DNA of 64,000 nucleotides. It comes from Piromyces finnis finn. Taxonomy: Eukaryota > Fungi > Neocallimastigomycota. Under the pieces are notes generated by a model. That model ran no database searches, was not told where the DNA came from, and saw only the letters and a program-made list of their open reading frames with translations. Positions 11,896 through 58,407 of this stretch are shown here, in pieces (position 1 is the stretch's first letter; each line of letters opens with the position of its first letter). The stretch covers positions 1,139,966-1,203,965 of the forward strand of contig MCFH01000010.1 of assembly GCA_002104945.1 (NCBI GenBank). The letters run 5' to 3'. The position numbers and the translations under genes were made by a program.

Positions 11896-12434
11896 ATTAA
11901 TTTAAAAATGTCGTTCCAGTTTCTATCCTGGTTGTTAAGACCCCCGCCATTGACAGTTCTTTAGTGATTTTCCTGTTTCAGGTTTGCGCTTAAAATATAG
12001 GGGTTAAAGGTCAATTCAGGTAAGTATAACTATACCACCGGACTCTACCCTAAGCAGTTAATTCAGATTGGTAGTTTTCTCCGTATCAAGCGGTTTTCCC
12101 ACTGAAGTTTAGAGTATATGTAGGAAGGGGTATCAATTAATTCACAGATTACTAACTATGGTCTTTGAGGGTTGTTCTCATCGTTAATCATCCTTCGCCA
12201 ATAAAGGTTCAGGAGATCACTGGTGTTGGTAGCTCGGTCTTTGTGTGATAGGATCGTTAAGAGCAATAAGCCATTCCATATTAGCCCTGCCCGGAGGGAT
12301 GATTGTGCCGACGTCGTTCTGATATGGCAATGTACAATAATGTACAATCACATACCATATATAACTCAGGGGGTTAGATGAGGATATATGGAAGTCTAAA
12401 AAAAAAAAAAAAAAAAAAAAATTAATTTAAAAAT
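11896..12434 (+). mobile_element. Retroposed non-coding element (SINE-like, unknown LINE 3'UTR or ncRNA retrocopy): body 11910-12397, poly(A) 12398-12420, TSD ATTAATTTAAAAAT
   Basis: About 41% GC island in far more AT-rich flanks, followed by A23. An identical 14-mer flanks it at 11896-11909 and 12421-12434. There is no substantial plus-strand ORF. Confidence 0.8.
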
Positions 12435-15400
12435 AAGTCGTTTTTGGATAAAAATTTTTTTAAATAAAATTAATATTTTAATTTTAAAATTTCTATATAT
12501 TAAAATATATTAAAATTTTATAAATTAATCAGATATTAATTTCATTTTAAATTTCAAAATTAAAATTTTTAAAGTTTTTTTTTTCATTTAAATAATTATT
12601 TAAATATTTATAATTAAAAAGGTTAGAATATACAAATAAGTTATTTTAATTTTAATAAAAAAAATAAAAATCATTGTTCTTTTTAATTGCTGTATATAAA
12701 CTCCATTAAAAAATCAGATATATATAAATAGAAAGTTGATATTATATTATTAATAAATTTACAAAAAAAAATTACAATAATAAGAAAATACTATGAAAAA
12801 CTTTATGTACAAAAATATTAATGAATAAAAACTTCAAGATTTCATATTTGTTATACATTTTATAATATTTATAATCCTAAGATGTAATAAATGATAGAAA
12901 TATATTTTATAACAATTTAATTTATTGTATTAATAGAAATATACTTTTAATAAGAAGACTTATAATCTAATCTTTTAAAATAAAAAGGTAAAGTTTCTTT
13001 TAAATAATTAGTTAAAAGCCAATAATATTATTATTTTTTAATTTTCAGCTTATTTTAATTTTAATTTTATTTATTATTTATTTATTCCATAATAAAATAT
13101 AGTTGATAAACATTAAAATACTCAAAAATTAAAAACGACAAGCCACAAATATTAATATATAATAAAAGAAATAGAAGTGCTACATTAATAGTTATTTATA
13201 TTATTTCTGTAAATATATAAAGGTTAGAATTTTTATTATAAATAATATTTATTTTGATATTTGTGATAATAAGATTAATAATTTTTTTTATCTATATTTA
13301 TAATCATAATTGTTTGTAACTCTTTAATAGTATCTATTTTGATGAAATAATAATTAATAATAACCGATATTGCAAGAAGATAAAAAAAATTTTATTAAGA
13401 GTAAAACTAATCAACCAACCTGCATGTATGTCAAAAATGCTTGAATTTCATTTTAAAAGTTATTTTTTTTTTAATATCAAGATCAAGATAACCATTTTAT
13501 GTAGTTCACCATGTTATAATTTTTTAGATAATTTTAATTTTTTATTTTTTAAGACAATATTCTATTTGAAAAATACAGAAAAAAAAACCTAAATACTTTT
13601 TTTTAAATTATTCAATTAAATTGTTGGCTAATTTATATATTTAGATAAACCTTTTTTTAATAATATTTAATATTTATATATTTTTTTTTAAATAAAATAC
13701 TTAATACTACTACTAAGTTTATAAGTTTATTCTTTAAAAATTTCTTTTATAGATGTATATATTTTTTAAAATAATTTAAAATTTTACTTTTTTTTGTAAT
13801 ACCTTTTAAATAAAAATGGAAAAATATGTAAATTAAGATATATTATGAATTAAAATATATTAAAATATCTAAAAATATAAACTCTCCAAAATTTAAATTT
13901 AATATTAAATTAAAATTTAATTATTTGAGGCTTTATATCTAATGTATTTTGTTTTTGTATAAATATTTTTTATGAAACATATAATAATTGAAAAATATTA
14001 GTATCCATAAATAACCATTTATGGATGAAAAATCTTAAAATATCAATATATAGATATATTAAAATTTAATATTCTTCTATTCTTTTTATATAAAAGGTAT
14101 TAGTTTATAGAGTGAACCAATCATTTAATTATGTTTTATATATTGAATTTGTTACCTATTGGATTTATTTTTTCTTTCATTTTACTGTTTATATATAAAC
14201 TATCCAATAATACTTAAATATTTCTCTTTTTCCAATCATCTTTATTACAAAAACATTATAATAATCTATATAAATTATATTAAATCAGATAATCAACTTT
14301 AAATTTATTAATAATATATGGTATTAACTTTAATATATACTTTAAGTAGTATGTTTTTTTCTTTCATTAATATGTTTTTTATAATATAGTAATTTTTAAC
14401 TCAATAATAGAATATAGTTTTTATTTTTATTAGTATGATGTATTTTCATTTATAATAATTATCACTGCTATTTATTATAAATGTTTTATAATATTTGAAA
14501 AAATCGATAGAGTTATTGTTTTTTCTTATATATAAATTTTATTTTTTTTACATTAATTGTTAATATTTATGTATATTATATTGTTAAATATTATAAAACT
14601 ATAAAATTTTTAATATATATGAATTGTTTAAATTTAAACAGAATATATTAAAATTGACTGGATCTAATATATTAATATCAACTGGCTTTGATATATTAAT
14701 AAACAATATACATTAAAGTTTATATTATTATATATTACTCACTACTATTTTAATATAATAATTTAATTTATAATATTTTCCAAAAAAAAAAAAAAAATTA
14801 TCTATTCCATATATTATTTAAATTCAATTTATAAATATATAATGACTTGTTTTCCTCAAAAAAATAAAATTTTTTTTCTTTTAAACCTTTTTACCTTTTT
14901 TATTATTATTTAGTATTGTCTTAGTTATAAAAAAATAAGTATATAGGGAATAGAGAAGTAAAGAAAGGCGATTTAATAGTTTTAATAACATAAAATTTAT
15001 TTTATACTTAATAAAATAAATTAAAATATATAGATATATTTAAATTTAAATTGAAAATAATAGAATACATAAGTAGGATTTAATAAAGGTGGATATAGAA
15101 TAATTATAACTAGTGAATAAAGTAAAAATTATAATAGCAATAATATAGTAAATAAAAATATTATAATTTAATATAATTTAAATTCATAAGAATATTTTTT
15201 AAAAATAAAACCAATCAAAACAAAAAGTGAAACTTGTAGTTATAAACGTTGCCAAAAACTGAACTAAAGATTTATCTAATTTGTGTTTAATCGATATTAA
15301 ATTAAGGCTTGAATTTTGTAAATAAGAAGGTCTTGTAAAGAGCTTAATCTTATTAAAAGGTTAATATTAAATTTTGATATATATAATGTTTTTAAATTAT

Positions 15401-38802: not shown

Positions 38803-41370
38803 AAGATGGATTAATAAGTAATGATTCTAATAATGCTACAGATAATAATTCTTCCGGTAATACTACTTCAGATAATGATGCTCATGGTTTAAATTTTATT
38901 CTTAAATTATTCAACCGTATTTGGGATGGAGACTTCCCCAACTCATGGAATGAATCCAGTATTGTTTCTATTCCTAAGAAGGGAGATTTGACAGATTGTG
39001 ATAACTATCGAGGTATATCACTTATCAATAATGGCATTAAGTTGATTTCCAAAATTGTCACCACTAGAATCTCAGAAAATGGTCTAAAGAATAATTTCAT
39101 TAGACCTGAACAATTTGGTTTTCGAAAAAAGGAAGAAAGTATCAGTCTTTTCATTTCAATCCAAGAAATATGCCGTAGACGTCAATTAGATAATAAAGAG
39201 ACATATTTGGCCTTTTTAGATCTCAGGAAAGCATACGATTCAGTCCCAATCGGTAATATTCTCCATAAATTAGATTGTTTAGGAATCCGAGGTAAGAGTT
39301 TACAATTTATCAAAAATTTATATTTAACATCTAAGGCTAATGTCAAATTAGATGGACAATTCTCGAAATCTTTTGATGTGAAGAAAGGAGTCCGTCAAGG
39401 ATGCCCTCTTTCTCCTATTCTCTTTAATCTCTTTATTAATGATATATTTAGAGAGTGCGAAGATCTAGGAGTCAGTTTAGGTGACACTCGATGCTGTGGT
39501 GGACTTTTTGCAGATGATATAGTTATTTGTGCTCCAACAAGAGGATGCTTAAAAAAGATGCTTAGAAGAGTTAATGAATGGGCATTGTATAATGAAATGG
39601 AATTTGGTATCCAGAAATGTTCAACGATGGTGATTCGTCCTGAATCAATAGAAAATCAGAACAAGAGAGATCCAACATTCTACTTAGCAGGACAACCCAT
39701 TCCAACTACTGATTGCTATACTTATCTTGGTGTTCCATTTGATAAGAATCTGTCCCTTAAACCAGTAATTAAAGCTCTTAATAACAAGGTTTTGAAAGGG
39801 CTTTTCTCAGTCAGTAAATTCTTAAGAAATCCTAATATTCCTATTCCTTTCAAAAAACTAGTACTTAACTCACAAGTGATTAGCAGAGTTTCATACTTTG
39901 CACCATTACTTGGATCCAACAAAGCTAGGTCTAGGATTGCTCAGAAGCATGTTAACAAAGGAATACGATGGATTGCCGGAGTTCATAAAGCTGTATCGTT
40001 TATATCTTTATACTCTATTTCAAAAGATTTGAATATTCCTCCATTGTCAGCCAAATGTGCGTTAGCTCAGGTTAGATGTTTTAACAAATGGAAAAACTCA
40101 AATTGTATTATCTCACACCTTGTCAATTACATTCCTAAATTTAGAAAATACACGTGGTGCAAATCAAGTAGGACACTTGATAAAAAATTAAAGAAACATG
40201 GAGATGTTAAAGCAGTTAAAAACTTTTATTGGAAAGATCTCAAAGGGAATTCAATCAAAGCGCAATATTATGACGATAATAAATTTAGTGAAACTAAAGA
40301 TTTTATTAAATTATGTTATGAATACCCAGAGTTTGCCTATGGCTTCTACTGGCTATTGAAAGCAAGAAGCGGATATAAGTTGGATGCTAGAGTTGCCAAA
40401 GCTGCCAAATTTGTTGATCCAGTTTGTCCTAACTACTGTCCATGTTGCAAGTGTGGAGATCAAAGTATTAAACATTGGTTATTAGATTGTCCAACATTTA
40501 GAGATATCCGTATTAAACATTATGATTCCATAGTCCAGCTATTAAATTTTTTCAGTCAACGTAATTCCAATAGTCCTATCAATAATAATGAAAATGTTAA
40601 TATCAGTAGAGATAGTAATAACATTAATAGTAATAGTAACAATAGTAGTAATAACAATAGTAATAGTAACAATAGTAATAGTAACAATAGTAATAATAAC
40701 AATAATAGAAATAATAATATTAGTAATGATAGCAATAGTGAAGATAATAATTCTAATTTAGATAGTAATTTAGTTAATGATAGTAATAGTTCTAATAATC
40801 CGGTGAATATTAATGTGTATGATTATTCTAGTGTGTGCAGTAAAATATTTAAATTCCTTCTTGGGGGAAGAAGTTTTAACAATATTAATTACAATTCAAG
40901 GGAATGGAAAGAACTTTGTAAGCGTCAGATTCAATCTGGTACTAATGAAGGAACACCATTCTTGACGGTAACCGCGGAACTTCTAACCAAAATCATGCCT
41001 TTTGCTATTGGCCAGCAATGGTCAATGTTCAAAAGGTTTGAAGCAACATCCAAGAGCGTCAATGCTGAAGAAACAGTAAGACAGGCCAGGAGGGCCAGCG
41101 CAACCAATGGAGATCATAATTTTGTTCCATGATAAAATTTCGATCTTTGGCTCGGTGTCCCATTGGAAGTCAAATACAATTATTATACTTTAGTATGATA
41201 GTGGCTTTCTTACTTTAATTAAAATTACTAGAATACATTATACCCAATTTTTATTCATTTGTGTTTAATTAAACATATTTTTTTTTATTTTTATTTTTAT
41301 TTTTAAATTTTTTATTACATGTATTATAATTTTAATTAAATTAATAATAAAGTTTAAAATATTTGATGCC

Positions 41371-41408
<38 letters not shown>

Positions 41409-41419
41409 TGGATTAATAA
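38803..41419 (+). mobile_element. LINE copy 2: 5'-truncated, body 38818-41404, 15-bp TSD AAGATGGATTAATAA, poly(A) tail
   Basis: TSD at 38803-38817 and 41405-41419. The 3' end is TTTGATGCCGTT followed by the A run at 41374-41406. Confidence 0.97.
38820..41132 (+). CDS. LINE ORF2 (partial): reverse transcriptase plus C-terminal CCHC zinc finger; no endonuclease in this copy
   Basis: NYRGISL, QFGFR, FLDLRKAYDSV, GVRQGCPLSPILFNLFI, LFADD, YTYLGV and CPCCKCGDQSIKHWLLDC. The frame is open from the truncation point to the stop. Confidence 0.95.
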   Translation, partial: NDSNNATDNNSSGNTTSDNDAHGLNFILKLFNRIWDGDFPNSWNESSIVSIPKKGDLTDCDNYRGISLINNGIKLISKIVTTRISENGLKNNFIRPEQFGFRKKEESISLFISIQEICRRRQLDNKETYLAFLDLRKAYDSVPIGNILHKLDCLGIRGKSLQFIKNLYLTSKANVKLDGQFSKSFDVKKGVRQGCPLSPILFNLFINDIFRECEDLGVSLGDTRCCGGLFADDIVICAPTRGCLKKMLRRVNEWALYNEMEFGIQKCSTMVIRPESIENQNKRDPTFYLAGQPIPTTDCYTYLGVPFDKNLSLKPVIKALNNKVLKGLFSVSKFLRNPNIPIPFKKLVLNSQVISRVSYFAPLLGSNKARSRIAQKHVNKGIRWIAGVHKAVSFISLYSISKDLNIPPLSAKCALAQVRCFNKWKNSNCIISHLVNYIPKFRKYTWCKSSRTLDKKLKKHGDVKAVKNFYWKDLKGNSIKAQYYDDNKFSETKDFIKLCYEYPEFAYGFYWLLKARSGYKLDARVAKAAKFVDPVCPNYCPCCKCGDQSIKHWLLDCPTFRDIRIKHYDSIVQLLNFFSQRNSNSPINNNENVNISRDSNNINSNSNNSSNNNSNSNNSNSNNSNNNNNRNNNISNDSNSEDNNSNLDSNLVNDSNSSNNPVNINVYDYSSVCSKIFKFLLGGRSFNNINYNSREWKELCKRQIQSGTNEGTPFLTVTAELLTKIMPFAIGQQWSMFKRFEATSKSVNAEETVRQARRASATNGDHNFVP

Positions 41420-44555: not shown

Positions 44556-46079
44556 ATGACTTCATTCAAGGTTGACTCAAAGAATGTTCAATACACAGAT
44601 GATGCTATCATCTCTACTTACGTTTACCAAGATACCAGAGTTTCTAAGAAGGACGGACAATTAATTGTTAAGCCAATTGAAGAAACTTACAACTTCAAGA
44701 CCGAAACCAAGGTTCCAAAGTTAGGTATTATGCTTATTGGTTGGGGAGGTAACAACGGTACCACCACCACAGCCGGTATTCTTGCCAACCGTCACAAGCT
44801 CACCTGGCAAACCAGAACCGGTACCCAAAGTTCCAACTACTTTGGATCCGTCACACAAGCCTCTACTTTAAAGATTGGTGTTGATGAAAACGGACAAGAT
44901 GTTTTCATTCCATTCCATGAAATTCTCCCAATGGTTAACCCAGACGATATTGTTGTTGGTGGATGGGATATCAGTTCCGTCAACATGGGAGATGCCATGC
45001 GTCGTGCCAAGGTTCTTGAACCAGATCTTCAAAACCAACTTTACGAAGAAATGTCCAAGATGAAGCCACTTCCAGCTCCATACTACCCATCCTTCATTGC
45101 CGCCAACCAAAAGGACAGAGCCGACAATGTTCTTAAGGGTAGCAAGCAAGACAACTTAGACGAAATCCGTAAGCACATCAGAGACTTCAAGAAGGACAAT
45201 GAATTAGACAAGGTAGTTGTTCTCTGGACAGCCAACACCGAACGTTACGCCGATATTCTCAAGGGAGTTAACGACAATGCCGACAACCTTCTTAATGCAG
45301 TCAAGAACAACCACGAAGAAGTCTCACCATCTACTATTTTTGCACTTGCCTCCATTTTAGAAAAGACACCATTCATCAACGGTAGTCCACAAAACACACT
45401 TGTTCCAGGTGTTATTGACTTAGCCATCCGTGAAAACGTCTACATTGGTGGTGATGACTTCAAGAGTGGACAAACCAAGATGAAGTCAGTTATGGTTGAT
45501 TTCTTAGTCAATGCCGGTATTAAGCCAGTTTCCATTACCAGTTACAACCACTTAGGTAACAACGATGGTAGAAACCTTTCATCACCAGCACAATTCCGTT
45601 CCAAGGAAATTTCCAAGAGTTCAGTTGTTGACGATATGGTTGACTCCAACAAGATCTTATACAAGGAAGGAGAACACCCAGATCACGTTATTGTCATTAA
45701 GTACACACCAGCCGTTGGAGATAGTAAGCGTGCCTTAGATGAATACCAAAGTGAAATTTTCATGGGAGGTCGTAACACCATTTCCATGCACAATGTCTGT
45801 GAAGATTCACTCTTAGCCGCACCAATTATTATTGATTTATGTATTCTTACTGAATTAATGACTCGTATTACCTGGAAGAAGCCAGAAGACAGTGAATTCA
45901 AGAGATTCCACTCCGTTCTTTCCGTTCTTTCCTACCTCTTAAAGGCACCAGTTGTTCCAGAAGGTACACCAGTCATTAATGCCTTATCTAAGCAACGTAA
46001 GTGTATGGAAAACATCTTCAGAGCTTGTGTTGGTTTACCACCACAAAACGATATGATGTTAGAATCTAAGGCTTTCTAA
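44556..46079 (+). CDS. INO1: Myo-inositol-1-phosphate synthase, copy A (507 aa, intronless)
   Basis: [71 protein letters not shown] and LSYLLKAP. Confidence 0.98.
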
Positions 46080-56883: not shown

Positions 56884-58407
56884 TTAGAAAGCCTTAGATT
56901 CTAACATCATATCGTTTTGTGGTGGTAAACCAACACAAGCTCTGAAGATGTTTTCCATACACTTACGTTGCTTAGATAAGGCATTAATGACTGGTGTACC
57001 TTCTGGAACAACTGGTGCCTTTAAGAGGTAGGAAAGAACGGAAAGAACGGAGTGGAATCTCTTGAATTCACTGTCTTCTGGCTTCTTCCAGGTAATACGA
57101 GTCATTAATTCAGTAAGAATACATAAATCAATAATAATTGGTGCGGCTAAGAGTGAATCTTCACAGACATTGTGCATGGAAATGGTGTTACGACCTCCCA
57201 TGAAAATTTCACTTTGGTATTCATCTAAGGCACGCTTACTATCTCCAACGGCTGGTGTGTACTTAATGACAATAACGTGATCTGGGTGTTCTCCTTCCTT
57301 GTATAAGATCTTGTTGGAGTCAACCATATCGTCAACAACTGAACTCTTGGAAATTTCCTTGGAACGGAATTGTGCTGGTGATGAAAGGTTTCTACCATCG
57401 TTGTTACCTAAGTGGTTGTAACTGGTAATGGAAACTGGCTTAATACCGGCATTGACTAAGAAATCAACCATAACTGACTTCATCTTGGTTTGTCCACTCT
57501 TGAAGTCATCACCACCAATGTAGACGTTTTCACGGATGGCTAAGTCAATAACACCTGGAACAAGTGTGTTTTGTGGACTACCGTTGATGAATGGTGTCTT
57601 TTCTAAAATGGAGGCAAGTGCAAAAATAGTAGATGGTGAGACTTCTTCGTGGTTGTTCTTGACTGCATTAAGAAGGTTGTCGGCATTGTCGTTAACTCCC
57701 TTGAGAATATCGGCGTAACGTTCGGTGTTGGCTGTCCAGAGAACAACTACCTTGTCTAATTCATTGTCCTTCTTGAAGTCTCTGATGTGCTTACGGATTT
57801 CGTCTAAGTTGTCTTGCTTGCTACCCTTAAGAACATTGTCGGCTCTGTCCTTTTGGTTGGCGGCAATGAAGGATGGGTAGTATGGAGCTGGAAGTGGCTT
57901 CATCTTGGACATTTCTTCGTAAAGTTGGTTTTGAAGATCTGGTTCAAGAACCTTGGCACGACGCATGGCATCTCCCATGTTGACGGAACTGATATCCCAT
58001 CCACCAACAACAATATCGTCTGGGTTAACCATTGGGAGAATTTCATGGAATGGAATGAAAACATCTTGTCCGTTTTCATCAACACCAATCTTTAAAGTAG
58101 AGGCTTGTGTGACGGATCCAAAGTAGTTGGAACTTTGGGTACCGGTTCTGGTTTGCCAGGTGAGCTTGTGACGGTTGGCAAGAATACCGGCTGTGGTGGT
58201 GGTACCGTTGTTACCTCCCCAACCAATAAGCATAATACCTAACTTTGGAACCTTGGTTTCGGTCTTGAAGTTGTAAGTTTCTTCAATTGGCTTAACAATT
58301 AATTGTCCGTCCTTCTTAGAAACTCTGGTATCTTGGTAAACGTAAGTAGAGATGATAGCATCATCTGTGTATTGAACATTCTTTGAGTCAACCTTGAATG
58401 AAGTCAT
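56884..58407 (-). CDS. INO1: Myo-inositol-1-phosphate synthase, copy B (507 aa, identical protein to copy A)
   Basis: Identical translation to 44556-46079. The off-frame shadow ORFs are also identical. Confidence 0.98.

Follow-up and report, generated by a model that had tools for sequence, protein, structure and literature searches.

The GC-rich island and A tail at 11910-12420 of the window (the whole 64,000-nt stretch of Piromyces finnis DNA that was analysed, to which all unprefixed coordinates refer) are very probably a young insertion of a short, non-coding and non-autonomous poly(A) retroposon with the build of a SINE. The first-pass annotation had described the island as a retroposed, highly structured non-coding RNA of unknown identity; its retroposition is borne out, and its identity can now be given, as it belongs to a family of poly(A) retroposons with a 522-nt unit, designated family A. 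The family displays several of the features by which SINEs are recognized, being short (under ~700 bp), non-coding and dispersed, beginning at a constant 5' end and possessing an A tail and target site duplications (TSDs). Family A seems to be undescribed and is an ordinary kind of mobile DNA. A search of the literature, with Repbase and Dfam outside its scope, found no paper on SINEs in Neocallimastigomycota or on non-LTR elements in Piromyces finnis. What appears to be new here is the identity of family A, a head shared with a second family of the same genome (family B) and a metagenomic one (family C), and the covariation of this head, to which the absence of a LINE-derived module from family A and a 34-nt deletion in the window copy may be added.

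The island proper, located on the plus strand at 11910-12397, comprises 488 nt with 202 G+C (41.4%, in agreement with the earlier hand count) within flanks of 15% GC. It is followed by a pure poly(A) of 23 residues (12398-12420, plus strand), and the whole is enclosed by the perfect 14-bp TSD ATTAATTTAAAAAT, whose left copy (11896-11909) is preceded by the T of a T|A nick site and is identical to the right copy (12421-12434), so that the A23 tail and the TSD reported earlier are both exact. Compared with the young consensus, the copy carries three substitutions, one of them common to the copies L002, L003 and L008, and a private 34-nt deletion. Read on the plus strand, it begins with the 5' part of the shared head (11910-11938, family positions 1-29, start GTCGTTCCAG, matched by the head 30-mer), which is followed by the deletion junction with a single GACCCCCGC (11939-11947) and by the rest of a ~150-nt 5' module common to families A and B (11948-12029; A1-154 versus B1-142, 75% identity). 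The latter contains a small hairpin, CCTG-TTT-CAGG (11972-11982), and is closed by the invariant, splice-donor-like ATTCAGGTAAGTATAA (12014-12029). The family-specific body (12030-12354), which resembles neither families B and C nor the LINE and includes TACTAAC at 12150-12156, leads to the 3' end (12355-12397), where a hairpin CCATATAT...ATATATGG, in which no covariation was seen, is succeeded by AAGTCT. The earlier statement that there is no substantial plus-strand open reading frame holds, the longest frame in the element being one of 63 amino acids on the minus strand that has no Pfam match.

Positions 1-488 are contiguous in the window copy only, all other copies having 34 extra bases, TTAGCATTCATAAGGCTTCTGGTTCGACCCCCGC; full-length copies possess two GACCCCCGC placed 34 nt apart, and the deletion is therefore private to the window copy and bounded by 9-nt direct repeats. 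With this segment went the B box GGTTCGACCCC and, from the head hairpin, its 3' half. No match to the B-box pattern exists anywhere in the 64-kb window, and folding of the truncated head is no longer significant (z=-0.5). The loss could have taken place by template slippage of the reverse transcriptase at insertion or by later replication slippage. Deprived of its B box and of one side of the head hairpin, the window copy most likely survives as an inert fossil and does not act as a source gene. Other internal deletions were noticed in the family: the copies L004 and L023 have their own, one of 6 nt, situated in the head, and one of about 10 nt, and at C46:608708-608911 and C162:345995-346171 large internal deletions join the family-A head to its tail.

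The first six bases of the element, GTCGTT, recur in the target 2 nt past the right TSD (12437-12442, plus strand), which had been read as the microhomology of a 5' truncation. The match itself is real, but the truncation is not, because all full-length copies of the family start canonically with GTCGTT and the window copy consequently retains its full 5' end. This hexamer occurs 5 times per 64 kb, giving p~5e-4 for its placement beside the TSD when judged after the fact, and no such match beyond the TSD was seen at the other family-A copies read. A simple microhomology-guided 5' join does not account for it, as such a join would have retained the intervening AA.

When the 488-nt island was used as the query against its own genome (56.46 Mb in 232 contigs), 62 matches were obtained, and all 43 candidates of the first look proved to be members of family A. 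Twenty-three near-full copies are 97-100% identical, a second set lies at 84-88%, and older fragments descend to about 71%. The family as a whole amounts to some 35-45 copies, at least 28 of them near-full and the rest fragments, most being 98-100% alike, while a 20-mer from its tail hits 36 sites in the genome versus 2 for the reversed control. The standard unit is 522 nt plus the A tail. About 20 copies share the exact first nucleotide, with the start GTCGTTCCAGTTTC (also given as GTCGTTCC and GTCGTTCCAG), and every intact 3' end consists of GGAAGTCT and a run of 9-50 A. At the other end, eight copies are truncated at differing points, 5' truncation being typical of copies made by LINEs, and each copy that was read is surrounded by its own direct repeat. 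Family homology was absent upstream of the full-length copies at the loci read. The abundance of copies that have poly(A) and a TSD, together with their common 5' start, supports the target-primed retroposition proposed in the first-pass annotation and, among the candidates it had listed, selects the undescribed SINE; a single retrocopy of a cellular non-coding RNA is disfavoured by the existence of a dispersed family with individual TSDs and common ends, in which Rfam finds nothing.

Among the 23 young copies, nine are identical to the consensus and the others differ from it by no more than 1.5%, and the copies of the family display a subfamily structure with diagnostic changes. Divergence in the older copies is unevenly distributed, reaching 6.4% in the head and 7.0% in the last ~80 nt versus 14.3% at body positions 155-300. 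Better-kept ends are the usual sign that ends matter for propagation, and the same may be suggested for family A.

The head of family A extends beyond the family. Its 30-mer is present at 209 genome sites and at 0 in the control, and the first 103 nt of a full A copy retrieved 225 candidates, mostly belonging to family B, a 535-nt element that ends in GGAAGTT-An and is likewise provided with TSDs. Families A and B are 88% identical over the first 69 nt and 75% up to A154/B142, where both close with the identical ATTCAGGTAAGTATAA; beyond this point their bodies are unrelated. Family B is several-fold more abundant, with A-type heads accounting for only ~11 of the first 100 matches listed. A metagenome scan with the head 20-mer yielded two contigs, L082 (Ga0138317_1110532) and L083 (Ga0138321_10010642), whose flanks have 20-30% GC and which carry family C, consisting of the same head (84%) on a different body, with poly(A) in L082. 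The body of family C is absent from the genome of the window, which indicates that the head has been conserved across genomes.

The part common to A, B and C is the first ~70 nt, and in full copies of all three families positions 59-69 form a perfect match to the B box GGTTCGAnnCC, a pattern for which 0.03 occurrences would be expected per 64 kb. The central hairpin of the head is formed by UGUUAAG:CUUAGCA in A and B versus UGUCAU:AUGGCA in C, amounting to two compensatory double changes; in the hairpin alignment 96.6% of cells are paired, and the observed covariation was reached by 6 of 500 shuffles. Further variants of this hairpin in the genome are confined to one mutated B copy. A small hairpin following the head is compensatory as well (CCUG/CAGG in A, CCC/GGG in B and C), and the 75-nt head folds better than its shuffles (z=-3.3 to -3.5).

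The earlier description of the island as highly structured finds no support for the element as a whole, whose minimum free energy of -120.2 kcal/mol compares with -124.1 +/- 6.2 kcal/mol for shuffles (z=+0.62; z=+0.15 for the minus strand). The longest uninterrupted helix in it measures 12 bp, the median length found in 60 dinucleotide shuffles (range 10-15). The complementary stretches listed in that annotation do exist, but they are no more than shuffled sequences offer. The 11-bp helix 12186-12196/12294-12304 stands at chance level, and the only change within it across the family, A to G at 12299, leads to a G-U pair, which is one-sided and not informative; the covariation check found no compensatory change in any of the listed helices in the family-A alignment. 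The contact between GGGGGTT and GACCCCC belongs to a 5'-3' panhandle of -26.5 kcal/mol, which surpasses all internal windows but is marginal versus shuffled tails (p~0.05) and has no counterpart in the sister families B and C. What lies at this locus is most likely a mobile element copy that is no longer active, rather than a structured RNA gene with a function.

The putative mobilising partner of family A is a 5'-truncated L1-like LINE in the same window (38818-41406, plus strand), in which a reverse transcriptase open reading frame (38988-41132, plus strand) is followed by the tail GATGCCGTT-A33 and which is flanked by the TSD (AA)GATGGATTAATAA (38803-38817 and 41405-41419), a repeat of 13-15 bp situated after a T (T|AA). 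Among solved structures, its reverse transcriptase is closest to human L1 ORF2p (E=6e-23). The LINE family includes at least 60 copies at 98-99% amino acid identity, many with an intact frame of 1512 amino acids, and can on its sequences be regarded as very active; a census of PF00078 is dominated by what look like LTR-type pol genes. The 3' end of the island differs from that of the local LINE, as stated earlier, the element closing with GGAAGTCT-An versus GATGCCGTT-An in the LINE.

The insertion sites provide the connection. Exact TSDs could be delimited for 17 family-A copies and measure 11-16 bp (median 14); in 15 of the 17 a T precedes the TSD, and in 15 of the 17 the TSD begins with A, then T. 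Ten family-B copies gave a median TSD of 13 bp at the same T|A. Family A and the LINE share the T|A target, the 13-15-bp TSD class and their youth. Since no link in sequence or structure between family A and the LINE was found, the partnership rests on these shared insertion signatures, from which the resident LINE is probably the driver of family A. In the loci L009:1-1500, L039 and L042, one 5'-truncated A copy was encountered about 100 bp downstream of a LINE poly(A) tail, and two B copies have inserted inside LINE reverse transcriptase coding sequence.

Family B is tied to the LINE by sequence. Its positions 401-450 correspond to the last codons of the LINE reading frame (41054-41106), with 85% identity over 53 nt, and this segment constitutes a ~50-nt two-hairpin module that occurs in the LINE, in families B and C, and in one old B copy (41054-41106, L037:901-947, and on the minus strand L082:157-201 and L005:425-471). 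The second stem of the module covaries (G:C, A:U, U:A). A covariance model (R1) built from the LINE, B and C sequences, run with filters off, recovered every LINE, B and C instance at E<1e-15; in the family-A copies to which it was applied, namely the window copy, L005, L024 and L031, it had no hit up to E=10, and a blastn comparison of A with the LINE returned no match below E=0.5. Without the module and without a blastn match, family A would probably be mobilised through its poly(A) tail alone, which fits its several-fold lower copy number, other explanations of that number being possible.

According to the mechanism proposed, the RNA of family A would be made from an internal promoter in the head, and its poly(A) tail would be used by the LINE endonuclease and reverse transcriptase for target-primed reverse transcription. 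The lack of both the LINE 3' end and the LINE-derived two-hairpin module in family A points to a relaxed, Alu-like mode of mobilisation. The window copy lost its 34 nt between the two 9-nt direct repeats through slippage of the reverse transcriptase or of replication.

The ancestry of the head was pursued with Rfam and ARAGORN. No Rfam match at E<=10 was obtained for the whole elements or for ~100-nt slices of the head, and the searches with the window copy, full A and B copies, the A and C heads and the whole window returned chance-level hits only (snoR69Y at 16 bits, CRISPR-DR3 and HgcG). ARAGORN found no tRNA in the A, B and C loci, and derivation from tRNA, 5S, 7SL or snRNA was not detectable by the two programs. 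The head also shows no resemblance to the tRNAs recovered from the genome, which represent four species (Arg, Glu, Gly and Leu). The A box in the head is a weak match read by eye. In family C, a 7-bp acceptor-like helix, GTTCCAG/CTGGAAC, stands right after the TTCGACA loop and appears in the centroid fold, and this is suggestive of a possible, degenerate tRNA ancestry of the head. In the course of the tRNA survey, tRNA-Glu(TTC) was found to be followed, after about 10 nt devoid of a T run, by tRNA-Arg(TCT) in L054, L056 and L081 (~position 1490-1501); these pairs, repeated on several contigs, look dicistronic.

Evidence on the polymerase is provided by T runs. Family A has three internal T4 runs and family B a T5 at positions 11-15 of its head, and in the tRNA genes of this genome that have a downstream T run the first run contains only 4-5 T in 13 of 20, tRNA bodies never exceeding T4. 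On these grounds RNA polymerase III might stop inside the elements, and transcription of family A by this enzyme is considered an even call. In view of the T runs that argue against polymerase III, the family is termed SINE-like.

A second set of motifs resembles splicing signals. CAGGTAAGTAT at 12017-12027 is perfectly complementary to U1, as a 5' splice site would be (0.06 occurrences expected per 64 kb); identical in A and B, it forms the end of their common 5' module. Family A has TACTAAC 130 nt downstream of this donor-like motif and an AG 13 nt further (12150-12169); in family B (L037:636-700), an AT-rich stretch of 53 nt containing CTAAT and TAG comes after the motif, and in family C CAGGTTATC takes its place. 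Spliced copies lacking the interval from the donor to TACTAAC were sought and none were found, the breakpoints of the two head-to-tail deletions on C46 and C162 being other ones.

A bolder reading of the head, which is regarded as a tentative and rather doubtful one, takes the ~70 nt as a new kind of SINE head that is not derived from tRNA, 7SL, 5S or snRNA and that came from a still unrecognized small RNA gene conserved in anaerobic gut fungi. If this were true, a head and a poly(A) tail would be enough for mobilisation, and two SINEs built on one head, the first stringent-like and the second relaxed, would coexist in a single genome.

Among the rivals to the retroposon interpretation, the one deserving most attention derives the A copies, as retropseudogenes, from a functional cellular gene for a small or non-coding RNA and sees in them by-products rather than selfish elements, in the manner of the pseudogenes to which 7SL, 4.5S and Y RNA give rise. 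It draws on the conservation of the head, whose hairpin shows compensatory changes, across three families and no fewer than two genomes, on the perfect B box and on the ~150-nt 5' module common to A and B. On the other hand, no parent locus free of a TSD was met among the about 45 loci read (of 209 head sites in the genome), Rfam recognizes no such RNA, the combination of three bodies with one head is the pattern of modular SINE evolution, and the subfamilies with diagnostic changes point to successive master copies, so that this explanation is judged improbable. The SINE-like retroposon reading is preferred also to the idea that the element is the 3' part of a second, unseen non-LTR family, either as a 5'-truncated LINE or as a long 3' untranslated region, the latter having been among the candidates of the first-pass annotation. 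A poly(A) tail, a TSD, some 5'-truncated copies and a 3' end unlike that of the local LINE would all be expected from such a source, but about 20 copies begin at one nucleotide, 522 nt from the tail, with no homology further upstream, and the 43 candidates of the genome search are all SINE copies. Moreover, the upstream frames scanned for three older copies revealed host-gene neighbours (a sulfate permease, an ankyrin-repeat protein and a subtilase) and no reverse transcriptase, a fourth older copy has upstream of it unassigned frames, a weak RRM match more than 2 kb away and again no reverse transcriptase frame, and none of the head 30-mer sites is nearer than 5 kb to the 5' end of any of the at least 20 intact LINEs compared. 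This second-LINE origin is very improbable and is in effect already refuted.

Least probable of all, to the point of being barely conceivable, is an origin from a viral or foreign RNA, or from a contaminant, which the LINE would have captured and reverse-transcribed a single time. The GC content so far from that of the flanks and the want of an Rfam relative could speak for it, but dozens of copies are dispersed over many contigs, each with its own TSD, neither an open reading frame nor a protein-family match is present, and the head is shared with an endogenous family of about 200 copies; the copy census has already refuted it.

As no paper on SINEs of Neocallimastigomycota was found, a curated set of families A, B and C would improve the repeat annotation of these AT-rich genomes, in which islands of 41% GC are easily mistaken for exons or non-coding RNA genes. 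The near-identical A copies could furthermore serve as insertion-polymorphism markers for strains, and the coexistence on one head of family A, without the LINE module, and family B, with it, constitutes a natural experiment on how the LINE recognizes its passenger RNAs. Elsewhere in the window, two inverted myo-inositol-1-phosphate synthase frames with identical Pfam scores (44556-46079, plus strand; 56884-58407, minus strand) enclose LINE fragments at 52.1-55.8 kb.

With respect to known systems, the closest comparison is with family B, which has in common with family A the poly(A) tail, T|A targets, TSDs of 13-14 bp and very young copies, the difference being the 50-nt LINE-derived two-hairpin module that B possesses and A does not. 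In stringent SINE-LINE pairs of the Okada-type model, SINE and LINE have a 3' tail or stem-loop in common. The LINE-derived covarying hairpin module of families B and C is in keeping with this model, whereas family A, having neither the module nor 3' identity to the LINE, falls outside it. Mg-SINE of Magnaporthe is an element of about 0.5 kb with tens to hundreds of copies, 5' motifs resembling A and B boxes, an A-rich tail and a resident LINE as its presumed driver, and it has been described with a tRNA-like 5' fold. By description only, family A resembles it in size, copy number, box-like 5' motifs, A-rich tail and presumed LINE driver, and departs from it in that its head is recognized by neither ARAGORN nor Rfam. 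The Alu/L1 pair exemplifies relaxed, poly(A)-dependent mobilisation of a SINE. Unlike Alu, family A has a head that is not derived from 7SL, is a monomeric element of 522 nt and contains internal T4 runs that argue against polymerase III; like Alu, it is non-coding, ends in an A tail without 3' similarity to its LINE and generates TSDs in the mid-teens at T/A-rich nick sites, and its putative partner LINE encodes a reverse transcriptase closest to L1 ORF2p.
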